Shown here one piece after another: positions 1,469-59,316 of a DNA stretch of 64,000 nt. The translations under genes were made by a program, and so were the position numbers. Position 1 is the first letter of the stretch; each line of letters begins with the position of its first letter. The notes under the pieces were generated by a model that was given only the letters and a program-made list of their open reading frames with translations, was not told where the DNA came from and did not search any database. The stretch spans positions 7,688,001 through 7,752,000 of the forward strand of contig OZ059896.1 of the NCBI GenBank assembly GCA_964057225.1, read 5' to 3'. The DNA is from Auanema rhodensis. Taxonomy: Eukaryota; Animalia; Nematoda.

Positions 1469-1869
1469 ATTTTTTTGTTTTGTTTTTAGAAAATAGTTTG
1501 TTTTATGAAAATTTCTAACGGGTATTTCATGGACTTCGTACTGATAAGAACTAAGCTATCTCTGTAATAATTCCTTGAACCTCGTACTAGCAGATCTGCG
1601 GGTTGCTCCCTCTAACTACTTGCTTTTTAATCTACTTTATTTCATCCACCAAGCGGTGTGATGTGCATATTACAACTTATTTACGGGTTTTTCTTAGATT
1701 GTCTAATAAATTTTTTTAAAATATTTGTGTTTAAAATACATATCTTGTTCTGAACAACTATTACATAATAATTGCTTCATTTAATTTTAAAATGCTGTAA
1801 GTATCATCTCGGATTAGAAAATGCCTAAAGGATATAAGAATAGTATTGCTGCTGGGTAAAAGGATTCGT

Positions 1870-1967
1870 GATCAAAGTACTGTGATCTGATTAGGTCATT
1901 TGTTGGTGCTATAGGCATTTTTTGGTGGGCGGGATGAAGTAAACAATGTAGTTTGTGACTATATATA
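1870..1967 (+). promoter_or_regulatory. Promoter of miRNA cluster copy 1
   Basis: GATCAAAGTACTGTGATC, AGGTCA, ATAGGC, GTGGGCGGG and TATATATA blocks are conserved in order in copy 2 while the spacers diverge. Lies ~85 nt upstream of the first hairpin. Confidence 0.6.
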
Positions 1968-2050
1968 CACCACCAAAAAGAGTCAAACTCATTCCTTCAC
2001 ATTATCAGGCAGTACACCTATTCTTGATGATAATCTGTTTTATTCTATAG

Positions 2051-2136
2051 GAGCGTTGACAGTCCCCTGGTGGAGTTCTTGTCGCGGTCCCAGAGATATC
2101 TCGTGACTAGAGCTACCACAGGGAGAATGTCCGTTC
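2051..2136 (+). ncRNA. pre-miRNA, miR-279/miR-44/miR-61 seed family (3p UGACUAGAGCUACCACAGGGAG, ~2104-2125), copy 1
   Basis: Long hairpin (CCCUG-GUGG/CCAC-AGGG, AGUUCU/AGAGCU, GUCGCGG/UCGUGAC). The 3' arm begins UGACUAGA. Mature arm is identical in copy 2 while the loop differs. Confidence 0.82.
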
Positions 2137-2167
2137 TAGTTATGTAGACCTAATTGCCCTTTTCCAT

Positions 2168-2250
2168 GATAAGTCCATAGCAGGCTTCATGACTGTGCAA
2201 TGCTTAAATGAGTCATTGCACAAGGTCTAGTTGCTTGGCATGTGCTTATC
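2168..2250 (+). ncRNA. pre-miRNA, miR-92/25/miR-235 seed family (3p CAUUGCACAAGGUCUAGUUGCU, ~2214-2235), copy 1
   Basis: Hairpin closed by GAUAAG/CUUAUC with UGUGCAAUG/CAUUGCACA upper stem. Seed AUUGCAC. Confidence 0.72.
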
Positions 2251-2306
2251 GCCATTACTGTGCATGAATGCCTGGTTTTGTCCATTGTCCCTAACAAGCC
2301 GAATAA

Positions 2307-2378
2307 GCTTGGATACCCGTATATTTCGGTGGTTCTTTTTATGAACAGAACCATGAAATAGTCGGGTTTCCAACATGC
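2307..2378 (+). ncRNA. pre-miRNA, miR-51/miR-100 seed family (5p UACCCGUAUAUUUCGGUGGUUCU, ~2314-2336), copy 1
   Basis: Hairpin UUGGA.ACCCG..UAUUUCG.UGGUUCU / AGAACCAUGAAAUA..CGGGU.UCCAA. The 5' arm starts UACCCGUA like miR-51/54/55/56. Confidence 0.87.
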
Positions 2379-3087
2379 GTGCAAGTTATACTTCATTAAA
2401 TTGTTATTTTTTTAGTTAGGTTTAATATTTTAGATGATATATTGGCAGTTCAATTACGTCTAGATGATCTATTGGCAGTTAAATTGTGCATTCTTTTCAT
2501 TCTACATGATTTATATATGGTTATTGTTATGTTCTTTTATTTTTCATTTGTGTTCAGAATATATAATAAATATTTCATTCCATATCTGTTTAAGATCTTA
2601 GAAAATCTAAATCAACATTTAAAATAATTGGTCTCGTAGCGGAGAATGCTCCACTCGCTGTCTAAAAATCTATGGTACATCAATCAATAAAACAAAAACA
2701 TTCTTAAAGCGATAGTTGTTGATTTAATAGAATCAGGCGGGATTCTTGTGTTATTCATTTGTTTTTAAAATTGAGTATCAGTAAATAAGTGCTGTTAATA
2801 CGGTTATTATCTTAATTGTTTTCTCGCTTAATTGGTGAAGTTTTTCATTATATCTGATTTTCATCATTCAATTTTCAATTCAATTGTATAGAATATATAA
2901 TGTTGTATATACATATTTTCTTTATTGTTCTTGAAATAGTAATACGCTATAAAGGTATATGCTATTAAGTACTAGGACACTTAGCATAGAGTTCGCTAAT
3001 GTAATGGCTCATTTTTTGATATTTTGTGCCAGAGGCGTTTTGCCAATGGCGCGTATGGATAATTGCTCATGGGCTCAGCGAAACCCG

Positions 3088-3188
3088 GATCAAAGTACTA
3101 TGATCTTTTATGAGGTCATATGTTCATGCCATAGGCGTGAAAAGTGGGCGGGTTTCAGGATGAGTAGCGAGTGTTAGGCATATAAATA
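3088..3188 (+). promoter_or_regulatory. Promoter of miRNA cluster copy 2
   Basis: GATCAAAGTACTATGATC, AGGTCA, ATAGGC, GTGGGCGGG, TATAAATA (3181-3188), in the same order as copy 1. Confidence 0.6.
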
Positions 3189-3294
3189 GCCTATACTATT
3201 CTGCGAAATATCAGTCTGCTTAGTATGAATTTCTTGATATACTTATTAGCTGTAGTTTCCTGAGCCTATTCTGTTCCTATTCTATTGTACCAAT

Positions 3295-3384
3295 AAGAGC
3301 GGTGACAGTCCCCTGGTGGAGCCCTCGTCGCGTTTGCATTGATTTCACGTGACTAGAGCTACCACAGGGAGAATGTCTGTCTTG
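3295..3384 (+). ncRNA. pre-miRNA, miR-279/44/61 seed family, copy 2 (mature ~3350-3371)
   Basis: Same mature arm as copy 1, different loop, and a compensatory G-U to U-A change at the top of the stem. Confidence 0.82.
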
Positions 3385-3426
3385 CTTATGTGTATCTGTT
3401 TCTTTGATATGTCCATCTATTTTTTT

Positions 3427-3509
3427 GATAAGTCCATAGCAGGCTTCATGACTGTGCAGTGCTTAAAGGAGTCATTGCACAAGGTCTAGTTGCTTGGCAT
3501 GTGCTTATC
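3427..3509 (+). ncRNA. pre-miRNA, miR-92/235 seed family, copy 2 (mature ~3473-3494)
   Basis: Near-identical to copy 1. The changes are one A-U to G-U in the stem and one in the loop. Confidence 0.72.
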
Positions 3510-3567
3510 GCTAGTATTGTGCATGAAAACCTGATTTTCCCCTATTTGTATATAACAAGCCGAATAA

Positions 3568-3639
3568 GCTTGGATACCCGTATATTTCGGTGGTTCTTTT
3601 TATGAACAGAACCATGAAATAGTCGGGTTTCCAACATGC
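3568..3639 (+). ncRNA. pre-miRNA, miR-51/100 seed family, copy 2 (mature ~3575-3597)
   Basis: Identical to the copy 1 hairpin. Confidence 0.87.
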
Positions 3640-3947
3640 GTGCAAGTTATTACCTTTTGTTTTTATTGTACTTTGATAAGTAGTTGTATATTCGACTAAG
3701 ATCAATTTCATTCTTCCTAAAACTGCGATACCAAGCCAAATGTAAAGTAAAATACGTGGAATGTGCGTACGCATGCAAGGTTCAAGGACGAAAGGTTTTA
3801 TCTCGACCACCGCATTACATGTTATAACATTATTGTGTCATACCCATGCTCAAAATAAAGTTTTTGATTAGTGTTTTGATTGCCTGTTACGTTTATTATG
3901 AATTAGTTAGTGTAACTTGCTTCCTTTTTTTGCAGTAAGTTTTATAG

Positions 3948-5165
3948 ATGGCGGACAAATTTGAAAATATCGCAGGAGGTTCATTTAAGTTGAACACAGG
4001 TTATTATATTCCACTCGTTGGATTGGGAACTTACAAGATTGTTGGGAGCGATGTAGTTTTTTTTTTAATTTTCGACTTCTTACAAGATTTTTAGGTGAAA
4101 CCCTGTGTCGATGCAGCTCTTAAGGCAGGATATCGCATGTTTGACACTGCTAAATATTACGTTAACGAACCGGAACTTGGGGAAGCTTTTAAGGTTTAAT
4201 TATTTACATTTCTGTATCCAAAACTGTTGATCTTTAAGGAACTTCTTCCTAAATATAACTTGACTCGTTCTGATATTTTCATAACAACTAAATTTTTCCC
4301 TGCTCCTGAAGACACAGTAGCGACTACTCGCCAACTTGTGGAAGAGTCACTCACTAATCTTCATACTGAGTGAGAGTTAATATTTTTAATTAGAGTACTT
4401 TATTTTCAATATTTAGTTACATTGATATGTATTTGATTCACTACCCAAAGTCTGACAAGCGTGAGGTTGATGACCCAAACAATGCTTTGCATAGAAAAGA
4501 CACATACCTTACTCTCGAATTACTGAAAGGTAACTTGCTTGTTTTATTTTTATTCATATTACTCTTCAGAGGAAGGGAAAATAAGATCTGTTGGGGTATC
4601 CAACTATGAAATTCGTCACATTGAAGAAATTAAAGCTTATGGGAAAGTAGGCTATTTTTTCATTAAAATGTTAAAGCTAATTCATATTAGGCTATGCCAT
4701 GTGGTAATCAAGTTGAATATCATCCCCACTTCACGCGTAATGAACTTCAACAATATTGCCAAAAGCAAGGAATTTTCTTCCAAGCTTTCTCTTCATTAGC
4801 ACGCCATGAGCCAAAACTTATTGAAGATCCTGCTGTTGTAGCTCTGGCCAGTAAACACAATACGACAGTTCCAGTATGTCAATACTTTTTGCTTTTTCTT
4901 TATTGTTTTTATAGCTTATTCTTCTTGCGTGGGCTCGCAGTCAGAGCGTTGGAATTGTTCCCAAATCTTCGACTCCATCTCGCATCATCAGCAATTTTAA
5001 GGTTTTTAATGATCATAAATTGGCTAATGAAATTCTTATCGGTTATCTATATACGGCGCTTTTCAGGTTACTGATATCAATTTATCTGTTGATGAAGTCG
5101 AAGAATTACGTAAATTGGACCGTGGGCAGCATTATATTAGATGTACCGGTTGGCTTGTTCTTTAA
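3948..5165 (+). CDS. Aldo-keto reductase (paralog 1), multi-exon
   Basis: IPLVGLGTY, GYRMFDTAKYY, FITTK, YLIHYP, IRSVGVSNY, NQVEYHPHF, IVPKS. D-Y-K-H catalytic tetrad present. Confidence 0.92.
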
Positions 5166-5291
5166 TGTCACGTTGTATCTGTTTATGTTGTGAATAAATA
5201 ATTTTCATTATCACCGTTTTTTTATTCATTGTTATTTCACTTTTATATCCTATTTAATTATTTTTTATTGGTGTATCTGTTTAAGTTGAGA

Positions 5292-6534
5292 ATGGCTGTT
5301 GAACACTTGTTCCTAAATACTGGAGAAAAAATTCCACTTGTGGGATTGGGTACTTACAATACATCCGATGAAGTAGGAATATTCTGGTTGATTGCTTACA
5401 CTAAGATGTTAAGATGAAAACTGTTGTGGATGCAGCTTTGGGATGTGGATATCGTCTTTTTGACACTGCTAAGGTCTACAACAATGAATCACACTTAGGA
5501 GAAGCAATTGAGGTTTTTCAATTGTGTGTTCTTTTCATTTTATTAATATCCGTTAAGGCTCTTTTGCCTAAGCATTCGTTATCTCGCAGTGACGTGATGA
5601 TCGAAACGAAAGTTTTGCCTTATAATGATAGTGCACGCATCAGATCTGATATTTTGGATTCTTTAGTTAAATTAAGAACAGAGTAGGATTATAATATACT
5701 AAATTGGGGAAAAAACATACTTTAAGCTATATTGATATTGTTCTGATCCATTATCCAAAAAATAATGATTGTGAAAATGAGGATAAAACGAACAAAGATT
5801 GTAGAAGAATCACTTATCTTACATTGGAAGAGCTTAAAAGTATCCTTAACATGCTTATATATTTTATTATAACCTAAAACTATTAAGGAGAAGGGAAAAT
5901 TCGATCGGTCGGCGTTTCCAATTTCGAACGCAAGCATTTAGAAGAATTAGCTAAATATGCTGAAGTAAAATAGCTGTGAACTTCTTATTGTACATATATT
6001 TGTTTCTCAGAGCCTTCCAGCTATCAATCAAGTGGAATTGCATCCACATTTCACCAGGAAAGACTTACAGACTTTTTGCCGTACCAATAACATTTTGATC
6101 CAGGTTTCGTTCTTTCGTTTTGGAAAGTATTATATATTCATAGTACAGGCTTTTTCTTCCCTTGCCAAACATAATGAAACCTTGATGAACGACCCGTGTT
6201 TGCTAAAAATAGCAGCTGCACACAACGCTAATCCACTTGTAAGATTAATTGAATTTAAACATTATTAATTATAAAAATATATAATTTACTTCAGCATATA
6301 CTTCTTTCTTGGGCATATTCTCAGCAAATTGCCATCATTCCAAAGTCTGCTACTCCCAGCAGAATTATTGATAACATGAATCAGGTAGATATTTCTTTCT
6401 CATTCAAATTAAAGAAACATATTCTCTTATAGGTGTGCTCCATTAAGTTATCTGATGAGGAAATCAAAGAGTTATATGGATTAAACTTGGATAAAAATTA
6501 TGTTGGTCGTTGTACCGGATGGCTTGTTGCTTAG
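5292..6534 (+). CDS. Aldo-keto reductase (paralog 2), multi-exon
   Basis: IPLVGLGTY, GYRLFDTAKVY, IETK, LIHYP, RSVGVSNF, NQVELHPHF, IIPKS. Shares the C-terminal RCTGWLV and intron positions with paralog 1. Confidence 0.92.
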
Positions 6535-6701
6535 ATAATATTGTTGTTTCTACTATATTGTAATGTTTTCATGAAATAATCGTGTTAATGTTACCTGTTC
6601 GATATCATAAAAATTGAATTTTAATAGTTTTCACACGTAATCTCTGTGAATATTCTGCCAAATCCGAGAGCTAGCTATCATATTCGCAATAGTACAAAGA
6701 T

Positions 6702-10787: not shown

Positions 10788-13607
10788 CTACATTAACGAA
10801 CAACAGACCCGTTCTGGAGGCTTCAATTTCACATCGTAAGTACGTAACGAATTTCGCTTTAAAGCTTTTTGTATTTGATCGAATCGACTGTGTCTTGAAT
10901 TCATTTCTACATCTGACAGAGTCAAATCCTATAATCGTTACAATATTAGTATTAAATATAAATTATTCAATTATACTTCACATGCATCAAATGCATTGAT
11001 TGTGATATTCATTCCTTCAAAACAGTCTTCCTCAAATCTCTCATCATCAGAACTTTGCTAAAATTGTAAATTTTATCATAAAGATGTTATATATTAACAT
11101 ACATTTTTCATATTAACTATCTGTGTTCTAACTCCATCAGGATGAAAAGTTGCTATTTGAGCAGTTGAATTATCAGTTTGAGGATAACCATACTTCTGAA
11201 AAAAAAGAGAAAAAACGTTTTTTTAATTTGAATTTAATTAGGCTATCATACAGTTAATTGAGGACGAAAATGTAATTGATCTCCATAATCTATGGCATTT
11301 AGCTCAGAAGCTAAGCTTTGCTCTGTTTGTGCATCACTTGTTGTTCGCTGTTCATTCAATTTCCTTATCACAGTTGAAGTAGTCATAGGATTGCCTGTAT
11401 TAGAGAAATAACATTTAAACACTTTTGCCAGAAAATCAATAATACCATTCAATTCTTTGTCAAGTGTACGAATTTCTGGATTGGTGATTCCCTGGACATG
11501 TTGCTCAGCTATGTCAAGTAAACATTTGGGGACAATTTCATAGCCCAAAATAGAAAGACAAATTGACAAGCAAAGCATAGGTTAAATATTATATATATTA
11601 TTTTTAGAAAAAAATATTAAAATAAATAAGTTATACGTATAAGATTATCTTAATTTCAAATTAGGGTAAATGAAGCAAAAGCATAAAAAAAACATTTTTT
11701 TACCTGATGAGATCATGATATCATTATTGTTTTTCTTATCACTATTTAAATCATCTTGATACTCAACTGATCCAATAGCAGTATTATACTTTAAATTATA
11801 ATATTAAATAAAAATTATTTTTAAATTAATAAATCAATATAGAAAACCAACCAAATAATCATCCCACATCTGCAATTGATCTTCGGACAAGTCAGGACAT
11901 GAACCTCCAATTATTTTTTCTTGTAGCTGATGCTGAAAGTACGTTATTTTCAGAACTAAAGCTTTTTTTTCTTATATAATATCATATATATATAGTTTTA
12001 CTTTTTATTTTGTATTTTAAAAAATAATAATTAGCTTACAGGCTGCTCCTCTATAATCTTTGTTTCATTATTTTCAGTTCGAGATTCAGATTCATTTTCA
12101 GTTTCAATCATATCAGATTCAGGAGAATTCTAAACTATTTCCTATACAAAATAAGTTTAATTAATTAATAAATCTACCGATAAAACGATAACTGAGTTTG
12201 TATGCCGGTTACGTTTCCTCCGTTTTTTTCTAAGCACGATAGCTGGAATTGGAGTTCCGTATCCAGCTATAAATATATAAAAAAATAAATATTATATATT
12301 AATAAAAAATTATTAAGAATAAGAAAGAGATGAAAGCTTTAAAACTGTTGATTTTCATATGTTATTAGTGAATGGGAATTTTTAACGATAGCTGAGAATG
12401 ACAGGACCTTGGAAACTGAGTATTACAACAGACACAGAGAAGATAAGCTTGAAGTAATGTCGGGAAAATGTCAATTATCTTCAATATAAACAAAACTCAG
12501 AAGAAAAAACCAGATAATTCAGTGGATAAGAAAAAAATTCGCTTGTTCATATTGTATAATTTGAATCGAAATCGAGACATTGGAGCCTTTAGTGACCGGA
12601 AATCATTGATGAGTTTGTGGCAAGTGTAAAGACTTAATGGTTACAGAGATGTAGCAGGTGCTACACACAAGACAAGATATAGTGGAGATCAAGAGTTAAT
12701 GACTGTTTTCCTATATGTATATAACTAATTTTTACCTTTTGTAAGAGTAAATACTTTGAACAATTTGTAAATATTGAAATGAAAATGATATATTGGTTTT
12801 GAATATGGGGGGCTATTAAGTAAGGTTTAGTTGTTTTTATATTGATTTTGTATAACAATTGAAAAAAAAATAACCATAAAAAGAAAAAGAAAAAGAGAAA
12901 TATTATATATTATATATTATTATTATTATTAAAATAAATTAAACAAACCTTGAATTTGAGTCAAATTAGCGGAATATCCCTGTGGAATACCAGTTAGTGT
13001 AGCATGCTGATGTGTTGTTAACCCAGGTAATACTGTATTAGCTCCCATAAGGTTTGGTGCTTGAGGTAATTGAGATTGTAAGATATTAGATGGTAACATA
13101 ATTGAAGAAGGAGGTATTGGTTGAAGAGGTGGTTGATATGCCAATTGATTGGCTGAAAATTGAGCCAACACTAAAATATGGAGTTAAATAAATCTTTGAC
13201 AAGAGCTCTGATGTTTAATATTTTAATGATCAAATTGAAAAAATAAGAAATTTTGTTCTATCGGTAAGCATATAATAAACGAAAATTTTGATATTAACCA
13301 TTGGAATATACATTACAATCATCTCCCATCATGATATTAGGTGAAGAAAATTGAGGTGGAAGATCAAATGCTTCGTTTAAACGAGAACGTGGAATGAATT
13401 CTGGAGCCTTTAACCATTCTAAATAAATAAAAGATGAATAAATAATATGTGAACAATTTCGATTATAAGAAAATGAATTCAAATGCTGTAAATACCTTCA
13501 GGGTCAATAGTCTTGAAAGGAACTTTTTTAAGAGGAATTTCGTCATTGTCATAGTAAGATGCAGGAGGACGGTCAGCTTCTTCAAAAAATACTTTCTTGT
13601 TCTCCAT
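10788..13607 (-). CDS. Unknown multi-exon protein with N-terminal PAM2-like motif, P/Q-rich region, basic NLS-like stretch and C-terminal CaaX-like CCSLM
   Basis: Exons give EEWLKAPEFIPRSR, YQPPLQPIPP, LRKKRRKRNR, GSCPDLSEDQLQMWDDY, KPPERVCCSLM*. Internal exon boundaries and the true start are approximate. Confidence 0.7.
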
Positions 13608-14972: not shown

Positions 14973-17900
14973 TCACAAACAACACCAACTACGACGTTTA
15001 GGAGATGGTTGTTGGTCTAATCTTAAAGCTTCTTCTAAATGATCATCTTCACGCTTTTGTAATGATCTAAAATTATTATAATATTATTATTTTTACTTTT
15101 AAACTATTTATTACATAGCCATTGCTTTCATACAGTTATCAATTCCAAATCCAGTAAAAGCACTCGTTTCAAAGAAGGGCATATGAAATTCCTTAACAGA
15201 AAGTATCAAATACTATTAATATATAACTTACATCGGCCAACTTTTTTCCAGCTTGGTATATAGTTTTTCTTGATCCATCATTTCCAAACAAATCAACCTT
15301 CAATATTGTTACTGTATGTTTGAAGTTTGTAGTTTAGATTACTTTATTCCCAACCAAACACATAACTGTGTTTTCTTCAACTCCAATTTTTACAGAATCA
15401 ATCCAATTGCGAACATGCAAGAATGATTGTTCAGATGTTACATCAAACATAAGTACAACTCCATCAGCTTTACGAAAGTATTGTTTCGTTATAGAACGAA
15501 ATCTGAAAATAAAATAAAACTACAGATCAGATTATATTTTTAATTTTCTGTCAGTATTGTTATTGCTTCTAATGATAGTTCACTGGAACCAAAAAAAAGT
15601 TTTTTGGCTGTCAGACTGTCACACATCGATATATTGTGTATCCGAAATGAAAAAGTATGTTTTTGCTCTTAATTTTTCAAATAAATTTTAAATAGAATTT
15701 AGAAATTTGAAAAAAAAAACTCTTTACCTTTCCTGGCCCGCTGTATCCCATAGCTGTAAGGTTATGAAACGATCTTGAACCCCAATTGTTTTAACAGTGA
15801 AATCAACGCCAATTGTAGCATTGAATAAAGGCTTGAATCGATTATGACAAAATCTGGAAAACATTATGAAAAACAAATTCAAATATTTTTTTGTCAAATT
15901 TTAATTCAATGAAGATTAAAGACAACAGTATCATAAAGATTAGGCGATATACATATGTAGTTCTATGGTTCATGAACATTTTTTATACATATTAAGTTCG
16001 TCACAGCAAAGCAGAACAAGGCATCACCATTAAACACTATATGAAACAAAAAAAAATTAAGTGGAACCTCTATCTTTTACATTTAGTATAAATAGAATAG
16101 CAAATCTACACAAGAACATACCAACCATTAGCTTTCTATTTCAACAATCATACAACCAATTTCATTCTTTTATATTTTATAATTTAATAATTTTATAGAG
16201 ATGGAAGAGAAGTACCGTGCTGCTGAGGCTGAGTCCGTCAAGAAGTTCGCCTTCTTCGGTGTTGCCGTCTCCACTGTCGCCACTCTTACCGCTATTGTGG
16301 CCGTCCCAATGCTTTGCATGTACCTCCAAGGAGTTCAATCCACCTTGAACGACGAGGTTGCTTTCTGCCGCACTCGTGCTTCTTCCCTTCAAGGAGAGTT
16401 CACCAAGCTTGAGGCTATCCGTGCTCCACGTAAGGCCCGTTCTGCCGGAACTTGCTGCTCTTGTGGAGTTGGAGCTACTGGACCACAAGGAGCTCCAGGA
16501 AGAGACGGACAACCAGGAAACGATGGACGCCCAGGAGCTCCAGGAAACCCAGGAGCCGACGCCGAGCAAGGAGACAACAACCAAGGAGAAGAGCAATTCT
16601 GCTTCGAATGCGAAGCTGCCGCTCCAGGAGCCCCAGGACCACAAGGACCACCAGGACCAGACGGACAACCAGGAGCCCCAGGACAAGACGGACCATCTGG
16701 ACGCCCAGGAAACCGTGGAGCTCCAGGAGCCCCAGGAAACGCCGGAAAGCCAGGAAACGATGGACAATCTGGACGCCCAGGAGCCCCAGGACAAACCCGC
16801 ACCGTCCCATCCCCACCAGGACAACCAGGAGCTCCAGGAGCCCCAGGACCACAAGGACCATCTGGACCAGACGGACGCCCAGGACACGATGGACGCCCAG
16901 GAGCCCCAGGACCACAAGGAGACAATGGAGCCGTAAGCCTATTGCAAAGCATAACCAACTTTAATATATATTTTATAGGATGGACAACCAGGAGCCCCAG
17001 GAAACGACGGACAACCAGGAGCCCCAGGACAAGACGGATCCAAGGGATCTTGCGACCACTGCCCACCACCACGTACTGCTCCAGGATATTAAGTCCTCCA
17101 TCTTCCATACACTTCTCAATTTTTTTTGTTCAGTGTATGATAAACTCAATAAACAGGGATATTCATCAACTTTTCATGCTATTTAATATACACAAAAGAA
17201 AGACAAGCTTAAAAAGATAGACATTTCAACACCTTGGAAAACGTCTTTTGTTAATTCGTTTAAAAGAAAAAACCCATTTTCGTCATCTTATACTGTTTTC
17301 ACGATGACATATAGTATATACTTGATAGAAAGTTAGCACACATTTACGCTAGCTTGAAGATTAGGAATTGAAACATTGAAATTAAATATAAATATTAGAA
17401 GATAGGTGAATTAAGCGACCAAAGTTGTTGTTAAAATAATTTGAATTTAAATGAGGAACAACAATGAACTTATGAAATAATTTGTAATATGTGGTAATAG
17501 TAAAAAGACAACATTTTGATCTTATCTTTTCGCATAATAATCTTTGTATTATTATAAAAAATATAATTTAATCGAACCTGTATGACTATTCTTATTGAAA
17601 TAATAAAAAATTTTTCTTAAATAAAGAAATATTGAACTTCATTATGCAACCGCCAAATAGTAAAATAATGTAAATGTAGAAACATTTTATGGAATTAGTA
17701 ATTAGAATAATTACGTGAAACCTAATGAAACGACTTCACGTCACAGTGAAATTCTTAAAATTTGAGTAAAGTTTATCCACAAGATTAGATTTTTGAAGTT
17801 GCGAAATTCAAGAAAATAAAATTTTAATTGTATGAACTTATCAAGTAAAAAAACTGAAAAAATGTTTTCAGCTTTTTCTTTAAAAAAAACTTTGATATTG

Positions 17901-20900
17901 TTATTATAGGTTCAAGTGGAATATTTTGGACACACCAGAATATCAACACTCAATTTGTAAAAAAAAGTTGCCAATCGTACAAATTATTAAAATGTTCGAT
18001 CTATGAACCTCTTGTTAGCATGACCGTTTGATTGTTAACAATCATAAGAAAAGATAAATGAACTTTTTTTTGATTGCTAGTGGAACCAACGCTGTAGGCT
18101 TAGCGTATAAATAGGAGCGAAAGCCATTTCGAGAACATACCAACCATTAGCTTTCTATTTCAACAATCATACAACCAATTTCATTCTTTTATATTTTATA
18201 ATTTAATAATTTTATAGAGATGGAAGAGAAGTACCGTGCTGCTGAGGCTGAGTCCGTCAAGAAGTTCGCCTTCTTCGGTGTTGCCGTCTCCACTGTCGCC
18301 ACTCTTACCGCTATTGTGGCCGTCCCAATGCTTTGCATGTACCTCCAAGGAGTTCAATCCACCTTGAACGACGAGGTCGCTTTCTGCCGCACTCGTGCTT
18401 CTTCCCTTCAAGGAGAGTTCACCAAGCTTGAGGCTATCCGTGCTCCACGTAAGGCCCGTTCTGCCGGAACTTGCTGCTCTTGTGGAGTTGGAGCTACTGG
18501 ACCACAAGGAGCTCCAGGAAGAGACGGACAACCAGGAAACGATGGACGCCCAGGAGCTCCAGGAAACCCAGGAGCCGACGCTGAGCAAGGAGACAACAAC
18601 CAAGGAGAAGAGCAATTCTGCTTCGAATGCGAAGCTGCCGCTCCAGGAGCCCCAGGACCACAAGGACCACCAGGACCAGACGGACAACCAGGAGCCCCAG
18701 GACAAGACGGACCATCTGGACGCCCAGGAAACCGTGGAGCTCCAGGAGCCCCAGGAAACGCCGGAAAGCCAGGAAACGATGGACAATCTGGACGCCCAGG
18801 AGCCCCAGGACAAACCCGCACCGTCCCATCCCCACCAGGACAACCAGGAGCTCCAGGAGCCCCAGGACCACAAGGACCATCTGGACCAGACGGACGCCCA
18901 GGACACGATGGACGCCCAGGAGCCCCAGGACCACAAGGAGACAATGGAGCCGTAAGCATATTTCAAAGCATAACCAACTTTAATATATATTTTATAGGAT
19001 GGACAACCAGGAGCCCCAGGAAACGACGGACAACCAGGAGCCCCAGGACAAGACGGATCCAAGGGATCTTGCGACCACTGCCCACCACCACGTACCGCTC
19101 CAGGATATTAAGTCCTCCATCTTCAATACACTTCTCAATTTTTTTTGTTCAGTGTATGATAAACTCAATAAACAGGGATATTCAACATATGTTCTATATT
19201 TTGTGCAAAAACAATAACATTAAGAAACACTAGTATAAAATTTGAGACACTTTTTGAAAGATTGAAAACAAAACGCATTTCATACTACTTAAATCAAATG
19301 GAGATAAATCGCCAAGTATAATTAAACTAACGAGTTGAGGGTGACAATTAACTATCTGAGCAAGTTATAATAAACGTTTTAACAGTACAGATTATATTTT
19401 TAAAGGTCGTCTAATCTCTAGATTAACATTAGAGCATAAGTATAACTCAAGAGGGATATCGGTACTGTATATTAGAATTTCTGGCAAGTGTAGAATGAAA
19501 AAGAAAATGTGTTACTATGATAATTAAAATTGTTCAATGTTTCATAATTATTATGATTTTCTGAACATTTATAAAAGTACTTTGATTCAGACATTAAAAC
19601 TTGTGAAACAAGGTCTGTTTCTTAATGTGCAACATAGGCAAAAACTTATAACTTGATTACATCATTAAAGATCATGGAGATATGAAATAGATAATTAATT
19701 ATATTTGTTCAGAAAAACAAAGTTTTAAACATTTCATTGGATTATGTGTTGAGATACTGCTACACTCTGTTACAACATATAATATGCTGAATTATAAAGC
19801 ATTGAATGAATACAAGCAATGAAAGTCTTAATATTTGAAGTCCTAATTTATGGTCAAGATGGTACTTTTTTATCAATATCTTGTACACGAGGGAAGCTCG
19901 TCGGATCCGTAAAGCATAATCTTGCAAAAAACAGTGGTTTTCCGTATCCGACCGTTTAAAAATCACTAATTTTTGTAAAAATGTATGCAATTTATTAAAA
20001 TATTATTTCTTTTGAAACCCTTCTATCTAAAAAAAAGTTCCGTTTTTTGATCCGGATAATTCCGCAAATTGAAGGAATATTTCCTGACCTGACGTCTCCT
20101 CATTCAACTACTTGGAACCAAAACTAACAAGAGTACCAGCTCCGTATGACCAATACACTGTCTGCTTTGTTTCCAAATATAATATTTGTTCAAAATGATA
20201 ATTTAAAATCACATAAGGTGATTGAGATTTCTGATCATGTAAAAGAAGAACTGTTGTTTAACTGCTGTAATCAATTTTATAAGCAAACGAACTGAAAAAG
20301 AGGTGGTCACAGCGAAAGTTTAAAAAAAAGGCTGAGGTCGCAGAACTTTTTTGATTGCTAGTGGAACCAACGCTGTAGGCTTAGCGTATAAATAGGAGCG
20401 AAAGCCATTTCGAGAACATACCAACCATTAGCTTTCTATTTCAACAATCATACAACCAATTTCATTCTTTTATATTTTATAATTTAATAATTTTATAGAG
20501 ATGGAAGAGAAGTACCGTGCTGCTGAGGCTGAGTCCGTCAAGAAGTTCGCCTTCTTCGGTGTTGCCGTCTCCACTGTCGCCACTCTTACCGCTATTGTGG
20601 CCGTCCCAATGCTTTGCATGTACCTCCAAGGAGTTCAATCCACCTTGAACGACGAGGTCGCTTTCTGCCGCACTCGTGCTTCTTCCCTTCAAGGAGAGTT
20701 CACCAAGCTTGAGGCTATCCGTGCTCCACGTAAGGCCCGTTCTGCCGGAACTTGCTGCTCTTGTGGAGTTGGAGCTACTGGACCACAAGGAGCTCCAGGA
20801 AGAGACGGACAACCAGGAAGCGATGGACGCCCAGGAGCTCCAGGAAACCCAGGAGCCGACGCCGAGCAAGGAGACAACAACCAAGGAGAAGAGCAATTCT

Positions 20901-23612
20901 GCTTCGAATGCGAAGCTGCCGCTCCAGGAGCCCCAGGACCACAAGGACCACCAGGACCAGACGGACAACCAGGAGCCCCAGGACAAGACGGACCATCTGG
21001 ACGCCCAGGAAACCGTGGAGCTCCAGGAGCCCCAGGAAACGCCGGAAAGCCAGGAAACGATGGACAATCTGGACGCCCAGGAGCCCCAGGACAAACCCGC
21101 ACCGTCCCATCCCCACCAGGACAACCAGGAGCTCCAGGAGCCCCAGGACCACAAGGACCATCTGGACCAGACGGACGCCCAGGACACGATGGACGCCCAG
21201 GAGCCCCAGGACCACAAGGAGACAATGGAGCCGTAAGCATATTTCAAAGCATAACCAACTTTAATATATATTTTATAGGATGGACAACCAGGAGCCCCAG
21301 GAAACGACGGACAACCAGGAGCCCCAGGACAAGACGGATCCAAGGGATCTTGCGACCACTGCCCACCACCACGTACCGCTCCAGGATATTAAGTCCTCCA
21401 TCTTCCATACACTTGATTCAAAAATTAGCAAAAATAAATACTTTTCTGCTATATAGCTTTATGTAACAAGAAAACTATGGTTGGGGCGATACAGAAGATG
21501 AGACGAACTTTAATGAACAACCTGTTTTGATTTATAAAAAAATCCGTCACAGGTATCATTGAAGTGATGCTAACAGTCCAGCGCGATTTTAATTTTCGAT
21601 TGTTAACACAAAGAGCCAAAGAAATTTCAACAGATGGTTTTTATTCTTTTGGGTGTTTTTTATTTTATTTCATAAAGCAGAACGAAAAGATTCAGTACCT
21701 GTGAAGAAAGCAGGTTTTCCCTACTGCTGAATCACCAACAAACACTACTTTGAAGATTCTATCAGGGTTACAACTGTTCTTAAATAACTATATTTTGAAA
21801 ACAAAAACTAGAATTAATGATACTTTGTCAAATTTTACTTCATTTTGGATGTTATTGTGAACTTCTTCAGCTTGATTCAATTCCTATAAGTTCAATATAT
21901 TTAAACTAGGTATTCATATTTCAACAAACATCAGCTAACGATGGTGCACCTAATATAGATGATCCAACATGCATATCTCCAGGCTCTATTGGTCTATATT
22001 GTGGCTTCTTAAAAATGAATAAAACAAATTAGTATATGAACTTTTAAATTAACCTTAATTGAAACTGTATAACCAGGTTTTTCCATGATTGTTGAATTAT
22101 TTTGTCGAGTAGCTACATTCTCCACTATAAATGGATAATCTGGTGATTCCAACTGACTTCTAAAACCAAATTATGTTTCATTAATTTAAAAAATAAAAAT
22201 ATTGGGTAAAAGTAATTAAATTTAAGAAAAGCATGTTTAGATATGTATATAAGCAAACCGAGATAAAGCATTTTCGCAAGGTGTTATCATAACGGTAGGT
22301 ATCGGCATTGGAGAATACGTTGATGGATTTTCCTTCTGAAGTTCTTCTTCCGGATCCGGAGAAATAGCCATCGATAGTTCCATGGTATCTCTACATACAT
22401 CAGACAAAGACAATACAAAGAAACGGAACAGAGAAAAAATTAAAAAGCACAAACACAAAAACTATTTTACTTGCTTTGGCGATTAATAATTTTGTAAAAA
22501 GAAAAGTTAAAACTCAATACCTAAGCATATCCACCAAAGGATCTTCGTATTTGCTATCAACAGTAGCAGAAGATAATTCGGCAGCTAAATTATAAGGATC
22601 AAATTGAAGATTTGATTCAGTAACTATGGGTTTCTGTAAATTTAATAAAATCTTCGAGCATTCTTGATTGAAAACTTACATCAGATTCTTGTGCACGTTC
22701 TATCTCTTCATTTTTCGAAGGAGATTCAGCTAACTCATCTGTAAAGAATAATATTAATAAACAAAACAAAATAATTTCTTTTTAAAGATACGTATCAAAT
22801 AGAAAATACAAAAAATGGATTTGAAAATTAAAACTGGATTTGTACTCTTCTATATATTGCTCATAGTACAAGCATTTAAACATCCTCTCATACTAGAAGA
22901 AGCCTCTTAAACATCTATTATTCGTTTTACTGAAGCATAGGAATGCAAATATTATTTCCGTAAAAATATACAAAAATCTAAGAATAAATGCTTGTTTTAC
23001 ATTTCTTTTTACATTTTATTATAAAAATATCTGAAAAACAACTAAAATTTCAGTAAAATAGCTCAAAAAGTGACGTTTTCATTAAATCGATATAATGTAA
23101 TATAGGAAGAGTATATTTAACATTGGAAACTAGTGACTATGTGTTTGCAAACCCTGTTAATGAGACCTAAGAGAGTGGTGGCAATCCCTTAATGGAATTT
23201 CTATTACCCATTTTCATTTTTTTTTTTCACTGGATATTTTTCATTTTTCAATCCCAAATAAATTGTTTTACTCACTAATCATCTGTATAAATTCTTTTTC
23301 TGAGATATAGCACTCGTTCGATTTATTCATCATGTCTTCCAATTCATTAAAATGCTTTAATCCAACGTAGTCCTTAATAGATCCCAGATCTTCCTGAAAA
23401 TTGGCTTTTCCATCGAAAAAAAAGTTGTTTTTTCTGCCATTAAAATGCTTACTTTTACTATGTACCCCTTGTGATCAGCATCAGCATATTTGAACAGTTT
23501 GCTTGCCTAAACTGTTAAAAATAACAAATAGTTAAATAATATTGAACTGGACCTGTGAACGGACAATCGATTCATCAGATGATGAACAACTGATACTATC
23601 GAAGTCTGACAT
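14973..23612 (-). CDS. EF-hand-containing Rab GTPase (RASEF/CRACR2A/RAB44-like), multi-exon
   Basis: N-terminal [15 protein letters not shown]-hand. Rab motifs [59 protein letters not shown]. Ends RRSWCCL*. Confidence 0.85.
16201..17092 (+). CDS. Nematode cuticle collagen, copy 1 (one short intron), nested antisense in Rab intron
   Basis: Col_cuticle_N region, RxxR site RKAR, CCSC, Gly-X-Y blocks, spliced C-terminus [13 protein letters not shown]. Confidence 0.96.
18220..19111 (+). CDS. Nematode cuticle collagen, copy 2
   Basis: Near-identical to copy 1. Confidence 0.96.
20501..21392 (+). CDS. Nematode cuticle collagen, copy 3
   Basis: Near-identical to copies 1 and 2, with one N to S change. 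Confidence 0.96.
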
Positions 23613-34256: not shown

Positions 34257-34997
34257 ATGGGAAAAGGACGCGGTGCTCGTAATAATCAAGGTGGAAGATC
34301 TCGTCGATATCGTGATGTAGAAGAAGAGAGCGAACAGCCCAACTCTAATGCAGAAGAATCTGAAGAATGCTCCGACGAATCAGTTTCTGACGAAGAAAAT
34401 AATTTTGAATGGCCTTGCAAATTGGCTATGTATGACTTTAACCAGTGTGATCCCAAAAGATGTTCAGGACGTAAGCTGATGCGCGCTGGCATGATAGAGG
34501 AAGTCAGGTTAGGAGCTCGGTTTCCTGGATTAATCTTGAGTCCTACTGGAACTGCAACGTTATCTCCAAGAGATCGTGAATTTATTGCATCGAATGGACT
34601 TGGAGTAGTGGATTGTTCATGGAATGAAGTAGAGCGAACTCCTCTTCACAAAGTTAAAGCTCCGGAGCATCGCCTCTTACCATATTTGGTAGCTGCTAAT
34701 TCAGTAAATTACGGTCGTCCCTGTAAGCTCACTTGTGCTGAAGCCTTAGCTGCTGGATTATATATTGTTGGTTATCCCGATGCTGCTGAAAAGTTGATGA
34801 CTGCTTTCACTTGGGGCCCTCATTTTATCACATTAAATAAAGAGCTTTTGGATATGTACGCGGGGTGTGGATCAAGTGAAGAAATTATTGAAAAGCAGAA
34901 TTTATACCTGGAAAGGATAGAAAAAGAAGCAATAGAAGAAAAAAATCGTCCTATTGATTTGCCTCCTTCGGATAGTAGTGATTCAGAATATGAATAA
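34257..34997 (+). CDS. TSR3: 18S rRNA aminocarboxypropyltransferase, intronless
   Basis: LAMYDFNQCDPKRCSGRKL, VVDCSW, RLLPYLVAANSVNYGRPCKLTCAEALAA, FTWGPHF. Confidence 0.96.
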   Translation: MGKGRGARNNQGGRSRRYRDVEEESEQPNSNAEESEECSDESVSDEENNFEWPCKLAMYDFNQCDPKRCSGRKLMRAGMIEEVRLGARFPGLILSPTGTATLSPRDREFIASNGLGVVDCSWNEVERTPLHKVKAPEHRLLPYLVAANSVNYGRPCKLTCAEALAAGLYIVGYPDAAEKLMTAFTWGPHFITLNKELLDMYAGCGSSEEIIEKQNLYLERIEKEAIEEKNRPIDLPPSDSSDSEYE

Positions 34998-35076
34998 TTT
35001 TTTTTTGTTATAACTTGTTCTTCATTCATTTGTTTTGTTTGTTTTGTTATAGCATTGTAATAAATTAATTTTAGGT

Positions 35077-35967
35077 ATGGATGAAGAAATAGAACAATAT
35101 GAAGAAAACTTTGAATATTTAATCGATAAGGTGGATATAAGACAAGGAGCAGAAGCACGTATATACAATTGTACATTCTTAGGCAAACCAGCAGTTCTAA
35201 AAGAAAGGCATTTTGCAAAATCTGCACCGTCTTTTATTTCTTTCTTCTAATAGGTTCTCAAAGAAATATAGACATGAAACTCTTGATATTCATTTAAACC
35301 ATTCCCGCTTGAAACAAGAATTGAAATGCATGAACAAGGCTCAACAGGTAATCTGTTATTTAATAGCTTTATCCATGTTTTGTAGTTGGGTGTGGAAACA
35401 CCCGCCATATACTTTGTAGATAGTATCAAGAACCATATAATTATGAATCGAATAGAAGGTATTACTGCTAAAGAATCCATTGAGAACAAGAGATTATCGT
35501 CCTCGAAGCAGGAGTTTGAAGTTTGTAGTTTTGCTTAATGTTTTAAGTTTATGCACGAATTTTAGAACTATTTGATTCAATTAGGAGAGCAAATGGGTCT
35601 TTCTATAGGAAAGTTGCATGCTGGGTCACTGATTCACGGTGATTTAACGACGTCGAATATCCTTTTGAAAAATGAATCTATAGATCATTTAGTTTTTATT
35701 GATTTTGGGTTATCTCAACAGGGACAGGTGAAAATCTTTGAAAATGCAATATTTGAATACAAAAATATTCAGATAACATCCGAGGAAAAAGGCGTTGATT
35801 TATATGTATTGGAACGTGCTATCAACAGTACTCACAGGGATTCTGAAAAGCTATTTGAAGGCATTTGGGAGGGCTATAAAAAATCCAATCCCAAGAAATG
35901 GGAATCTCAACTTGCTAAATTAGAGGAAATTCGACAACGGGGAAGAAAGAGAGATATGGTTGGCTAA
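35077..35967 (+). CDS. TP53RK: KEOPS complex kinase Bud32/PRPK
   Basis: QGAEA, VLKERFSKKYRH, IHGDLTTSN, FIDFGL, EEKGVDLYVLERA, RGRKRDMVG*. Confidence 0.95.
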
Positions 35968-54600: not shown

Positions 54601-57214
54601 ATACCTCTTTCTATCCCACCTCTCTCTCTGTATCTTTGTTTCTCTGTAACTCTCTGTCCCTCTCTCTCTCTCTCTCTCTCTTACTACCCCAATATATATG
54701 TATATGTATGTATCAGTTTTACTACTCTTATATTCTTGTTTCTCTTTTTTTCTTTTCCCCCCTTTTCTCTCTTGATGATGTCTATTACATTTTTTTGATG
54801 TGGATTCTGTTTCAAAGATTTTTCATGTAGATTATTTCAATCACCTACTTGTACTTAACTTTTTCTTTTCTTTGTTAGAACAAAAAAAAATGAGATCCGT
54901 TCGAATTGTTGAAAAAAAAATGCAAACTAGATGAAGAGCTAATCAACATATCCGCTGTTCCCTCATGAGTTTCTATTGAATTGTTTTAATAGTATGATCC
55001 ATCTATTTACTACGTCAATATATATTTTCAAATACATAAAACATTTTGTTTGTATCACTTCACGTTTTCATTCATACTGGGATTGAAGAGAATTGAATTT
55101 TCCCTGAATTTTAGGTCACTTCAAGACAAGAAGCCATTTTAACCAGTTCTTATGTTGCCTGAATTCGGATAGTTATCTGCGGTGTACCATCCTAAAGTTT
55201 CTTTAAAAGGTCATCATAATAGAAAAAGTACATATCCACACGGGTGGTCATAATCATTATGAAAATTAAAATGTGTAATCGTTTCAGTTTAATAAATTTC
55301 GTTATGAAACTACTCTTTACTATACTATATACTTCTTATATTTAAGTAATGACTATTAAATAAAATCCACTAAATCCATATAATTGAATTACAATATTAA
55401 ATTGAAAATAAAATGAAATGATTAAATATTTTAAAAATCTATTTTTAATTTATCACTTAATATAAAAAATGTAATATAGTTTTCAAAGTTGAAAGTCTTC
55501 GATTGGCGGTGATCATTCATCATCCATCCTGCCTTCAATCCATGGTTTCATTATTATATAGACGTATATATATATATATATTCTCATTAATTTTCTCACA
55601 AATATATATATATATATAAAATAAAGTTTAACTATATTGTTATATTATATCTTGAAGACCAAAAACAGTTTGACTAGATCATTTGCAAAAGCTCAAAATA
55701 GAAATGCGATACTGAGGATAATACTGTTTGAATCCTGTGAAGGTAACAATCTTTTGCAATACATTGGTGATAATGATGTTGATGATGGTCGGTTTAAACT
55801 CTGTAATCTCATATATTAAAAGAAAATTATCCGAAATTATATATAAAAACTGAAATATAAACCTATATCTAAGTTTTTCATAAAATTATATTTAGAAAAG
55901 GAAAAAAAGGATAAAAAAGTAAATTTCGAGTGATTGAGACGAAAAATTCTATGAAAACCTCATCGATATAAAACATTTATAGATATAGGTGGACGGAAAA
56001 TATGTATTTCAAACATAAAATGTTGAGACAGCTAGAGTTTATGTAGTATAGGTATTAAGGTAGATTGGGAAAGAAATTAAGATAGGGAGAGATACTAGAT
56101 GAGATAGAAAAAGAAGGTAATACTCAGAAGGAGTGCGATTGAATGAGGAAAAGAGTCGAGAAATAAAAAAAAAGAAGAAGTTGAGGAAGAAATAGAGAAA
56201 CAGACAGAGGGCCACATGCATTCAGGCTTCAGTAGCATGTGTTCTAATCGTGCACGCTGTAAGTACAACTATGTCTCTCGCTTCTCCTCTATGTCTGACC
56301 AGCCCTAACGATGTAGTAGTTCGGCTGGCAACAAAAGAAGTAGTCAGCTCCCTCTCTCGCTTTCGTTCGCTTTTTTCTGATCATCGCTGTCGTAGTGTTC
56401 GTCGTCGTCGATGACAATTCTTTCTCCCCTTATACGTTGTATGCTGAAGACGATTACGTTGATAACATTGATAATAGTCCACCACTTTGCGAAGATGATG
56501 ACAGCACTAGGATAACGATGAAGTTCAGAACAACGAACATCAGTAGATGTCTAGATCGGCAACATTTGATTTCAAAAAGAAGTCTACCTCGCATTTCCAT
56601 TTATAATTTGTCTCGCCCATTTTCATTATCTCAATTGTATTATTATCGTTTAGTTTTTTTGCTTTAATGGGAATTTGTGACACATTTTAACGCTATTAAC
56701 TTGCTGTATCTTAATGACTCTTGATTACAACCAGAGTAAAAAAAAGGCGAAACGTTTTCAATTCTGGAATATTCTATTTTCCTTAACATTCTTTAGTTCA
56801 CTCTTTCTATTATCTATCTGTTTTTTTGTTATTTTGAAGTTTTTATATATTTTATTAGGTCTATGGATGTTCTAACTATCTCTCATTTATTTGCAACTTT
56901 TTCTGCTCGCAAAAGATAGAGTATGTGTATCTAGATAGAAATGAGAGGATATGAAATGATTTGTGAAGCAACTCATAAAGAGAGTTGACGAGAAAAGGTT
57001 AGATGGCTATAGGAGGGAGAGGAAAGGTAGTGTTTGGAAGAAACTCTATGTTTCTCCTCATTCTTTACCAGAAGAAAGAAAAATAGTTCTACTGAGTTGC
57101 GAGTAATAGGAAAAGAACGCTTGAAAATCAGTCTACGTGTTCGACATGCTCTTGGCCACTCTTTTTTTGCGGTCCCTCCAACTAGCAGAATTTCTCGCTT
57201 TCCCTCCATTGTCA

Positions 57215-57220
<6 letters not shown>

Positions 57221-57288
<68 letters not shown>

Positions 57289-57295
57289 CCTCCCT

Positions 57296-57339
<44 letters not shown>
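57221..57339. repeat. (CT)n microsatellite, interrupted
   Basis: Directly visible. Confidence 0.97.
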
Positions 57340-57340
<1 letters not shown>

Positions 57341-59316
57341 AACAACTCTTTCTCTCTCAAACGCTTCCTTTACTTCTTCGTTCTCTGTTTTCATTCTATA
57401 TCATAGGTCAGACATAGAGAAGAAAAGGAAATATACATAGGAAATCAGATGGTGAGACACACAACGAGAGTGCACAAAAGCGAGGGACAGACTGAGAATG
57501 AAAGAGAGTTGTCTCGAATTTGGAGGTTGTGGAGGGGTAAGAAGTAGCATTAAGTTGATCAGAACAGACTTTTTGTATTGCGTTCCCTCTCTTTCTAACC
57601 TTTTTCTTTTTAGTTACCAATTTCTCTTTATCGGTCTACCTTTACTCTCGTATTTCTCTCTCTTCCTCTTTCGTGATCTTTTCTTTGCTACTCTTCTTCT
57701 CTTGTAACTATTCCCTCTTTTTCGATCTCCCTCTCTCAGTCTCTCACTACTGGCTCTCTGGTTCTCCTCTCTCTATCTTCCAATTCTCCTTCTTCATTCT
57801 ATCATGTACTTTCCTATTGGCTTGTACTTTTTGTCTTCTGTCTCCATATCTTCCGTCGCCGCTCTCCATCCAGCTGTGTACTCTGTCGTCATCTCTCTGT
57901 CTCGTCTCGACTCTCCCCCTAACAGCCCTGGGCCCCAGGCCCAGCCCCAGGCCCACACGGTGGATACCCTCTGCCCCATACCCTTGTTCTGCTCAACTGC
58001 TTAGTGTTCCTCCTCATGATATTTTTCTGGTTTCATCCAGCGAACGCTGTCGGTGCAAGAGTTTAAAACTATAGTAGTTTTTGATAATAGAATAGTTAAC
58101 CTCAATTCTCTCCCGAAAAACGAATCTATCTGTCCTCGTAATTGAAAGCACAAAACAATTATTTAGCAAAATAAAGACTAATTTCTTTTAACTTTATTTA
58201 GTACATGTCTGCTTCTCATCCATGTTCATTAGTGTTCGTCACATGGAATGCCCGACCTGAATATCACTTCGTTTGATATCCAAAACAACGTACCTTCTCA
58301 GTTCGAATGTTTCCATTCTCACATTTTAATTTTCTATCAAGCCTATCTCCTATTTCGACATAGCCAATCTTCGATTCGTTTTCAATCTTTTTCTCAATTG
58401 AGAACTGCCCCCTACACCCCCCTCCATCCATTCGCAGCATCCTTTCGAGCCCGTGTGATGTGCACTTTCTCGTTCCGACCCTCGCCCTTTTCCTCTCTCA
58501 TCTTTCTCTCTCTCCGGTTTTCTCATAATGTTTTTTCATTTTCCTTACTCCTCTTACTCTCGTGTTCGTCTATTGCATTTCTATTTTCTTTCTTTTGAAC
58601 CCCCTCCTCGCTATTCTACTCATCTTTCTCCGATGCTTTGACCCGTTCCTTTTTCTGCCTGCTTTCTCTTCAGAATTAACGTAGCTATATGTTAGCATCA
58701 GCAGACGTAAAATGTTGAACAATTCGATAGCTGTTTCCTTTTTGGACCATTAGCCTCATGCTTATCTTTTTCTTTCTCGTTGCTTAATTTGATTAAATTC
58801 CTCCGAACTTGGTGCATTACAACCTGACTACTCTCAGTTGGTGTTCACACGCGCACTGTTAATATGTTGCAATAAGACAGCTCATATCATTTCAAAATTC
58901 TTCAGTTTCTGGTGTGTGAATGTCTGAAGAAATCCGAATGATTATACGCTGGTTTCTGGTCTTGGAAACAGCAATCACAGCCTGTCGAGATCCAGCTGTC
59001 TAATCGTCTTCTTTTTCATCTCCGTTTCTTCGTCTACTTGCTGATGATTCTGCTGCTGCGGTTCGGTCTGCTCTCGGTCCCATGCACTTCCCTCCTTGAC
59101 TTTTCCCCCTTATCCCTACGATCTACGCGCTAAAGATATTACCATTACGGACCTAACCGTGCAGATTCTCGTCTATCACACATGTTCACCTATCTTTCCT
59201 TCAGAGTTTTTTCTTTTTTTTTCTAATTCATTTGTGTTCTGATGATTTGCGCCGCCTGTTCGTCTATCCGTTCACTCTTCCTACATCGTAGGTAATAGTC
59301 GTAGTTGCCCGTAGTT

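Follow-up and report, generated by a model that had tools for sequence, protein, structure and literature searches.

A tandemly duplicated, putative three-member microRNA cluster in Auanema rhodensis, conserved in a second Auanema species and probably related to the strongylid mir-5352 cluster

We analysed a stretch of 64,000 nt from the nematode Auanema rhodensis (assembly GCA_964057225.1, contig OZ059896.1, positions 7,688,001 to 7,752,000 of the forward strand), hereafter called the window, in which two copies of a ~0.6-kb unit, A and B, each carry three hairpins (hp1, hp2 and hp3). We consider it very probable that the two units represent separate polycistronic microRNA genes, located between protein genes of Auanema, a free-living clade V rhabditid, and that they are maintained by selection and arose by tandem duplication. 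The strongest argument comes from Auanema sp. JU1783, in which a syntenic cluster with identical predicted guides, diverged loops and spacers, and compensatory changes in pairing points to genuine, selected genes of the microRNA type. A literature search found no published microRNA set for the genus Auanema.

Two three-hairpin units in the window

The window is AT-rich (G+C content ~32 %), and units A and B are intergenic, flanked by two enzyme genes, i.e. the exons of GnT-II/MGAT2 at 513-1341 precede the units and the exons of an aldo-keto reductase (AKR) follow them. Three direct repeats make up the duplicated part: 2047-2145 and 3293-3391 with a spacing of 1246 nt, 2167-2279 and 3426-3538 with a spacing of 1259 nt, and 2285-2389 and 3546-3650 with a spacing of 1261 nt. 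The original prediction, made from the letters of the window, had described two copies of a three-hairpin cluster ~1.25 kb apart and in the same order, and its coordinates proved exact.

All six hairpins lie on the plus strand. Hairpin 1, which carries the seed of the miR-279/44/61 family, extends from 2050 to 2137 in copy A and from 3297 to 3387 in copy B, and its predicted guide is located on the 3p arm at 2104-2126 and 3350-3372 (UGACUAGAGCUACCACAGGGAG, starting with UGACUAGAG). Hairpin 2, which is mir-5352-like and related to miR-92/235, covers 2167-2252 and 3426-3511; its guide, (CA)UUGCACAAGGUCUAGUUGC, is likewise predicted on the 3p arm, with a 5' end at either 2214 (CAUUGCAC) or 2216 (UUGCACA) and a 3' end at ~2238 in copy A, and from either 3473 or 3475 to ~3497 in copy B. 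Hairpin 3, with the seed of the miR-10/100/51 family and mir-5895-like, covers 2297-2389 and 3558-3650, and its guide is predicted on the 5p arm at 2314-2335 and 3575-3596 (UACCCGUAUAUUUCGGUGGUUC, starting with UACCCGUAUA). In the 64-kb window, exact matches to each of the proposed guides are confined to two sites (2104/3350, 2214/3473 and 2314/3575; zero occurrences expected by chance), and a search allowing up to three mismatches revealed no further ones. Only two copies of the unit are thus present in this stretch, which speaks against the high-copy dispersed repeat that had been named as a possible objection.

When folded, all six hairpins are stable, with energies of -33 to -42 kcal/mol and z scores of -3.5 to -5.0 relative to dinucleotide shuffles; copy A of hp1 reaches -42 kcal/mol (z -4.6), and the z scores of hp2 and hp3 in copy A are -4.8 and -5.0, respectively. 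In hp1 of copy A, pairing involves 19 of the 22 guide nucleotides, and the guide is followed by a lower stem of ~11 nt. Taking the hairpins of the window and of JU1783 together, 16-19 of the 22-23 guide nucleotides are paired, within stems of 31-35 bp and above lower stems of ~11-12 nt, which corresponds to the canonical microRNA hairpin as defined by MirGeneDB-type rules (at least 16 paired positions in a ~22-nt duplex and a lower stem of ~11 bp).

The guide arms of the two units are identical (23/23, 25/25 and 22/22 positions for hp1, hp2 and hp3), as originally claimed, and conservation drops sharply at the bases of the hairpins: identity between A and B is 38 % in spacer 1, 71 % in spacer 2 and 18 % downstream of hp3. 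The accompanying claim that loops and spacers diverge holds for the spacers and for the loop of hp1 (15/22 identical) but not for the other two hairpins, given that the loop of hp2 shows a single change and the whole hp3 block (2292-2389) none. Therefore, the A/B comparison by itself reveals differential conservation within a hairpin for hp1 only. Both of the structure-preserving changes that had been reported between the copies were recovered, i.e. the hp2 pair A2200-U2216 of copy A, which becomes G-U in copy B, and a loop-proximal pair of hp1, where the G-U of copy A corresponds to U-A in copy B; a further substitution, U2077C, costs copy B a pair.

Conservation at the syntenic site in Auanema sp. 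JU1783

The corresponding locus was reached by following an AKR exon of the window through a representative protein library to a strongylid match, from there to named homologues and finally to the AKR gene of JU1783 on its contig; ~42 kb of JU1783 DNA in two loci (L001 and L005) was examined. At L005, MGAT2 is followed by a 1.4-kb intergenic region and then by AKR, in the same order as in the window, where the downstream AKR exons are collinear by tblastx. The intergenic region contains one full cluster, with the three hairpins in window order and z scores for folding of -7.3, -6.8 and -5.0.

The guides are identical between the window and JU1783 over 23/23 positions in hp1, 21/21 in hp2 (counted from 2214, CAUUGCAC) and 22/22 in hp3, and the blocks comprising the guide and the adjoining stem agree at 25-26/27, 23/25 and 27/27 positions, respectively. 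By region, identity is 81-100 % in the arm blocks, 40-65 % in the loops and 23-35 % in the spacers; at this syntenic site the arms are thus more conserved than the loop and flanks, as expected of microRNA genes. In hp1, the 3p arm does not vary between A, B and JU1783; hp3 shows 27/27 identical positions in its 5p arm, 7/12 in its loop and 23/27 in its 3p arm. The invariant arm is therefore the 3p arm in hp1 and the 5p arm in hp3, with both arms of hp2 almost equally conserved across the species. Six pairs have changed in a compensatory manner, two in hp1 and four in hp2, three of the latter within its 11-bp lower stem, and the star arm of hp3 has accumulated one-sided changes that retain pairing.

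How much divergence would be expected without constraint can be judged from TSR3, a protein gene of the same region: the best match of the window protein is that of JU1783, with 75 % identity, followed by strongylids with 66-69 %. With TSR3 only 75 % identical, neutral intergenic DNA should be saturated and unalignable, and the spacers are indeed unalignable. The original suggestion that the hairpins are under selection is thus borne out by a comparison which, at the level of sequence, argues for it independently of the two window copies.

The same comparison bears on the history of the units. Two full units and two neighbouring AKR genes are present in the window species, compared with one full unit in JU1783. 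Since the spacers of A and B can be aligned in part and those of JU1783 cannot, the simplest view is that the tandem duplication took place in the window species once it had split from JU1783. In hp1, the 5p arm of copy B equals that of JU1783, which indicates that three changes in copy A are derived.

Of note, JU1783 carries two extra copies of hp3 alone, 179 nt apart (L001:9297-9553, minus strand). They are situated upstream of a second AKR gene, which shares their strand and lies next to TSR3 on the same contig. Both copies were found by blastn with hp3 at E values of 3e-22 and 1e-19; in one of them, the guide arm shows a G-to-U substitution, and GGCGGG followed by a TATA-like element stands upstream of the pair. 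The 5p arm that hp3 has in the window is accordingly matched exactly by two of the three JU1783 copies, the third differing by one change.

A block located ~90-190 nt upstream of hp1 is also common to units A and B and JU1783. It consists of GATCAAA...ATGATCT, AGGTCAT, A(T/A)AGGC and GGCGGG, with a TATA-type box 33-35 nt further on, and its identity amounts to 58 % between A and B and 65 % between B and JU1783, compared with the 23-35 % of the JU1783 spacers. In unit A, the block (GATCAAAGTACT..TGATCT, AGGTCAT, ATAGGC, GTGGGCGGG) covers 1868-1931 and the TATA-like box 1960-1966, with GGGCGGG 33 nt before the box and the base of hp1 ~90 nt after it; in unit B, the block covers 3086-3152 and the box 3181-3187, 35 nt after GGGCGGG (all on the plus strand). 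In JU1783, TATAAATA follows GGCGGG as the TATA-like element. Within the whole window, the motifs of the block occur only at 1870/3088, 1893/3113, 1911/3131 and 1925/3144. From these motif matches and their conservation, the block and the TATA-like boxes probably act as a promoter, and each unit would form its own transcription unit of ~0.6 kb. Candidate poly(A) signals for the two primary transcripts are the first AATAAA after unit A (2565-2570, plus strand, 176 nt past hp3) and the first after unit B (3854-3859, plus strand, 204 nt past hp3). A fourth hairpin was considered at 1910-1988 in the TATA region of unit A (GUGACUAUAUAUACACC), where the Rfam model mir-279 scores 18.8 bits (E value 2.1), and was rejected, as it folds with a z score of only -1.7 and is unconserved in unit B and in JU1783; this Rfam match is probably due to chance.

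Most likely, one polycistronic transcript is made from each unit. The upstream block with GGGCGGG and the TATA box ~34 nt further on would serve as promoter of a primary transcript with three pre-miRNA hairpins ~100-110 nt apart, each of which would be cut by Drosha/Pasha ~11 bp above its basal junction, whereupon Dicer would release duplexes of ~22 nt. The guide, and with it the range of putative targets, would be given by the arm that is invariant across species, i.e. 3p in hp1, 3p in hp2 and 5p in hp3, and duplication of the unit would double the gene dose in the window species.

Some points weigh against reading the units as microRNA genes. The comparison comprises two species only, namely the window species and JU1783, and no part of the window matched Rfam at the gathering threshold. 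In a search with E values of up to 10, the best model for hp3 was mir-2237 (RF03332) with 23.8 bits, vs a gathering score of 70; for hp1 it was mir-279 (RF00754) with 17.1 bits (gathering score 56), and mir-92 gave no match for hp2 at E values of up to 10. The mir-2237 and mir-279 models align with hp3 and hp1, respectively, in hairpin shape and in the arm that bears the seed, but with scores below gathering the two hairpins are not members by the Rfam criterion. Such a lack of Rfam models at threshold would also suit other conserved structured elements, e.g. an untranslated-region or regulatory RNA structure in transcripts of the neighbouring MGAT2 or AKR genes, or a mobile or fold-back element of small size, and the extra hp3 copies upstream of the second JU1783 AKR gene suggest that this hairpin moved or was copied together with AKR genes. 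We nevertheless regard an origin of this kind as improbable, considering the microRNA-type profile (an invariant arm opposite a nearly invariant one, with loops that change freely), the presence of three different hairpins, each bearing a known microRNA seed on the arm, and at the end of that arm, where it would be expected, the stems of 31-35 bp with lower stems of ~11 bp, and the conserved TATA-type upstream block that each unit has of its own. Besides, there are two copies in 64 kb of the window and only syntenic ones in ~42 kb of JU1783 DNA, and no inverted terminal structure.

It is still harder to believe that the identity of the arms between A and B results from recent gene conversion or from a duplication in the assembly instead of selection. 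The hp2 and hp3 blocks are (near-)identical between the copies, loops included, which would fit conversion tracts, but the arms are also identical in a second species with ~75 % protein identity, and the comparison with JU1783 largely refutes this explanation. The A/B spacers have moreover diverged by substitutions as well as indels, so that the units must be old, and 0.78-0.91 of the sampled words of the stretch are found in each of nine DNA runs from three studies, no run listed with the stretch being recorded as RNA. Independent, selected microRNA genes thus remain the explanation that we favour.

Relation to known microRNA families and clusters

The original prediction had assigned the hairpins to three seed families. 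The seed words are present on the predicted guides of hp1 (GACUAGA at 2105-2111 and 3351-3357, in the invariant 3p arm) and hp3 (ACCCGUA at 2315-2321 and 3576-3582, in the 5p arm), with the 5' end of hp1 predicted from structure and that of hp3 likewise predicted. In hp2, AUUGCAC is found at 2215-2221, again relative to a predicted 5' end, and here the guide may be 2 nt off the miR-92 register, starting at 2216/3475 rather than 2214/3473 and having the seed UGCACAA instead of the miR-92 seed AUUGCAC. The later start is favoured because hco-miR-5352 of Haemonchus contortus begins 2 nt further downstream, and because the 11-bp lower stem places the Drosha cut at ~2238-2240, with a product of 22-23 nt; the cross-species invariance of hp2, which begins at 2214, speaks for the earlier one. 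By seed, the three genes would be new members of known families. A full-text literature search with the three guide sequences returned no paper, and a metagenome scan for the three-seed pattern with gaps gave 0 matches.

The seeds GACUAGA, AUUGCAC and ACCCGUA are shared with the mir-42/43/44 and mir-61/250 clusters, mir-235 and the mir-51 family of Caenorhabditis elegans. To our knowledge, the miR-44/61, miR-235 and mir-51 families do not lie in one cluster in that species, and their 3' halves are unlike the Auanema guides. Linkage of a nematode miR-279-family gene with other microRNAs is an old arrangement, which is exemplified by Brugia, where mir-279 is linked to mir-250 and mir-2c, and in this respect the Auanema cluster resembles it.

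A close counterpart of the three-family combination was found outside C. elegans, i.e. the strongylid cluster of mir-61, mir-5352, mir-43 and mir-5895 (PMC5709059, PMC3282659). In H. contortus, these four lie on one strand within 422 bp, with 3p, 3p, 3p and 5p as the dominant arms (PMC3282659, PMC5709059); mir-61 3p starts with UGACUAGA, mir-5352 3p with UUGCACA preceded by CA, and mir-5895 5p with UACCCGUA (Winter et al. 2012, PMC3282659). Within clade V, the cluster has been reported from gut parasites but not from free-living species, and outside it only from some ascarids (PMC5709059). Its microRNAs are secreted by strongylids, and mir-5352, which is reported to reprogram the host gut epithelium by mimicking miR-92a, has been interpreted as a case of convergence on host miR-92a (Perez et al., bioRxiv 10.1101/2024.12.20.629722).

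Both clusters are intergenic and confined to one strand, have their hairpins ~100 nt apart and keep the order 61-like, 5352-like and 5895-like. They have in common the 5' 8-9-mers UGACUAGA (3p), CAUUGCACA (3p) and UACCCGUA (5p), and the dominant arms of the strongylid members (3p, 3p and 5p) match the predicted guide arms in Auanema. Tandem duplication of the whole cluster, as in the window, is likewise known from some strongylids, namely T. circumcincta and H. polygyrus (PMC5709059). We therefore think that the Auanema cluster, which lacks mir-43, is probably homologous to the mir-61/5352/43/5895 cluster of strongylids and ascarids, though much diverged from it.

The main alternative is a genuine cluster that is not orthologous, i.e. 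that miR-44/61, miR-235/92 and miR-51/100 genes became linked independently in the Auanema lineage and share their order with the strongylid genes by coincidence, which we judge less probable, though it has a good deal in its favour. Auanema has three of the four members in the right order, without a mir-43 hairpin between the second and the last; mir-43 is absent in and near the units, and TATCACAG matches the window only at 11366 and 26435. The guides are identical to those of H. contortus over their first 7-9 nt only, and with ~12-15 of 22-23 nt identical overall, owing to different 3' halves, they fall far below the >95 % mature identity among strongylids (Gu et al. 2017, PMC5709059). Once the octamers at the 5' ends are set aside, the resemblance to the H. 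contortus guides is no greater than that of shuffles (p ~0.1, 0.6 and 0.9), and hp3, in a comparison by hand, is equally close to hco-mir-55 and hco-mir-5895 outside the seed. Nor is the genomic neighbourhood shared, as judged at TSR3 and the AKR genes: no mir-61/5352/5895 cluster was found within 10 kb of TSR3 in H. contortus (L002) or of AKR genes in H. placei (L004) and in the H. contortus array (L006), and in A. ceylanicum the cluster is located on Acey_s0007, a scaffold that carries neither the AKR genes (Y032_0059g...) nor TSR3 (Y032_0243g...). Finally, the known cluster is reported as restricted to gut-parasitic species of clade V and ascarids, whereas Auanema is free-living.

Coincidence would, on the other hand, have to account for the agreement of order, arms (3p, 3p and 5p) and first nucleotides in all three members. 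The 9-mer CAUUGCACA, with C in first position, also matches hco-5352. This C contrasts with the miR-92/235 family, which we take to start with U. In addition, the 5p arm of hp2 is significantly similar to that of hco-5352 (14/22 positions, reached by 5 of 5000 shuffles), a similarity that is in part imposed by pairing to the shared seed. The duplications of the whole cluster in T. circumcincta and H. polygyrus likewise argue against independent linkage. Divergent homology with the strongylid cluster hence appears to us the better account of these data.

Two further candidates were noted in this context. A remnant of mir-43 was sought in the 47-nt spacer between hp2 and hp3 and rejected, the spacer being unfolded (z +0.4 to +0.7) and not alignable to JU1783. 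The other candidate is UACCCGUAUUUCGG in the H. contortus AKR array (L006:8940-8975, minus strand), which lies between two of the genes and opposite to their strand, resembles the hp3 guide UACCCGUAUAUUUCGG and is part of a hairpin that folds weakly (z -1.4). It may represent a miR-51-family gene that has decayed or diverged, or a chance similarity.

Gene neighbourhood and biological meaning

Downstream of the units, the window contains two AKR genes in tandem at 3900-6550 (plus strand), the second of which is the closer match to the JU1783 AKR gene adjoining TSR3, with nine collinear tblastx segments; AKR arrays, either tandem or fused, are present in strongylids too. TSR3, a single exon, and a Bud32-type kinase gene follow each other at 34257-35967 and are adjacent in JU1783 as well. 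In JU1783 the AKR gene with the hp3 pair abuts TSR3; in the window AKR and TSR3 are ~28 kb apart and in inverted orientation, and the interval contains three nearly identical cuticle collagen genes in tandem (16201-21466, plus strand, spaced by ~2.1-2.3 kb). Other repeats are a 25-nt direct repeat (TAGATGAT.TATTGGCAGTT.AATT) at 2431-2485, with two copies 30 nt apart within the unconserved DNA that separates units A and B, and a long simple repeat of CT/GA type at 57034-57417, which can be read as an open frame SLSLSL...

The analysis adds three unannotated, strongly conserved predicted microRNA genes, of which the window species carries two full sets. They also provide an example of cluster evolution, with one unit and two stray hp3 copies beside the second AKR gene in JU1783, and two full units in the window species. 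The cluster is unannotated but ordinary in kind, and it is of moderate interest because of its probable kinship with a cluster that was supposed to be specific to parasites. We lean slightly towards the view that the mir-5352 cluster is older than parasitism, that free-living Auanema keeps a three-member form of it under strong purifying selection, and in duplicate, and that the host-directed function in strongylids represents the reuse of an endogenous regulator of the worm. If the link to the strongylids is true, the restriction of the cluster to gut-parasitic nematodes (PMC5709059) would need revision, as would the origin of mir-5352 by convergence on host miR-92a (10.1101/2024.12.20.629722), and the endogenous role and targets of the cluster would become approachable in a culturable and genetically tractable free-living worm.

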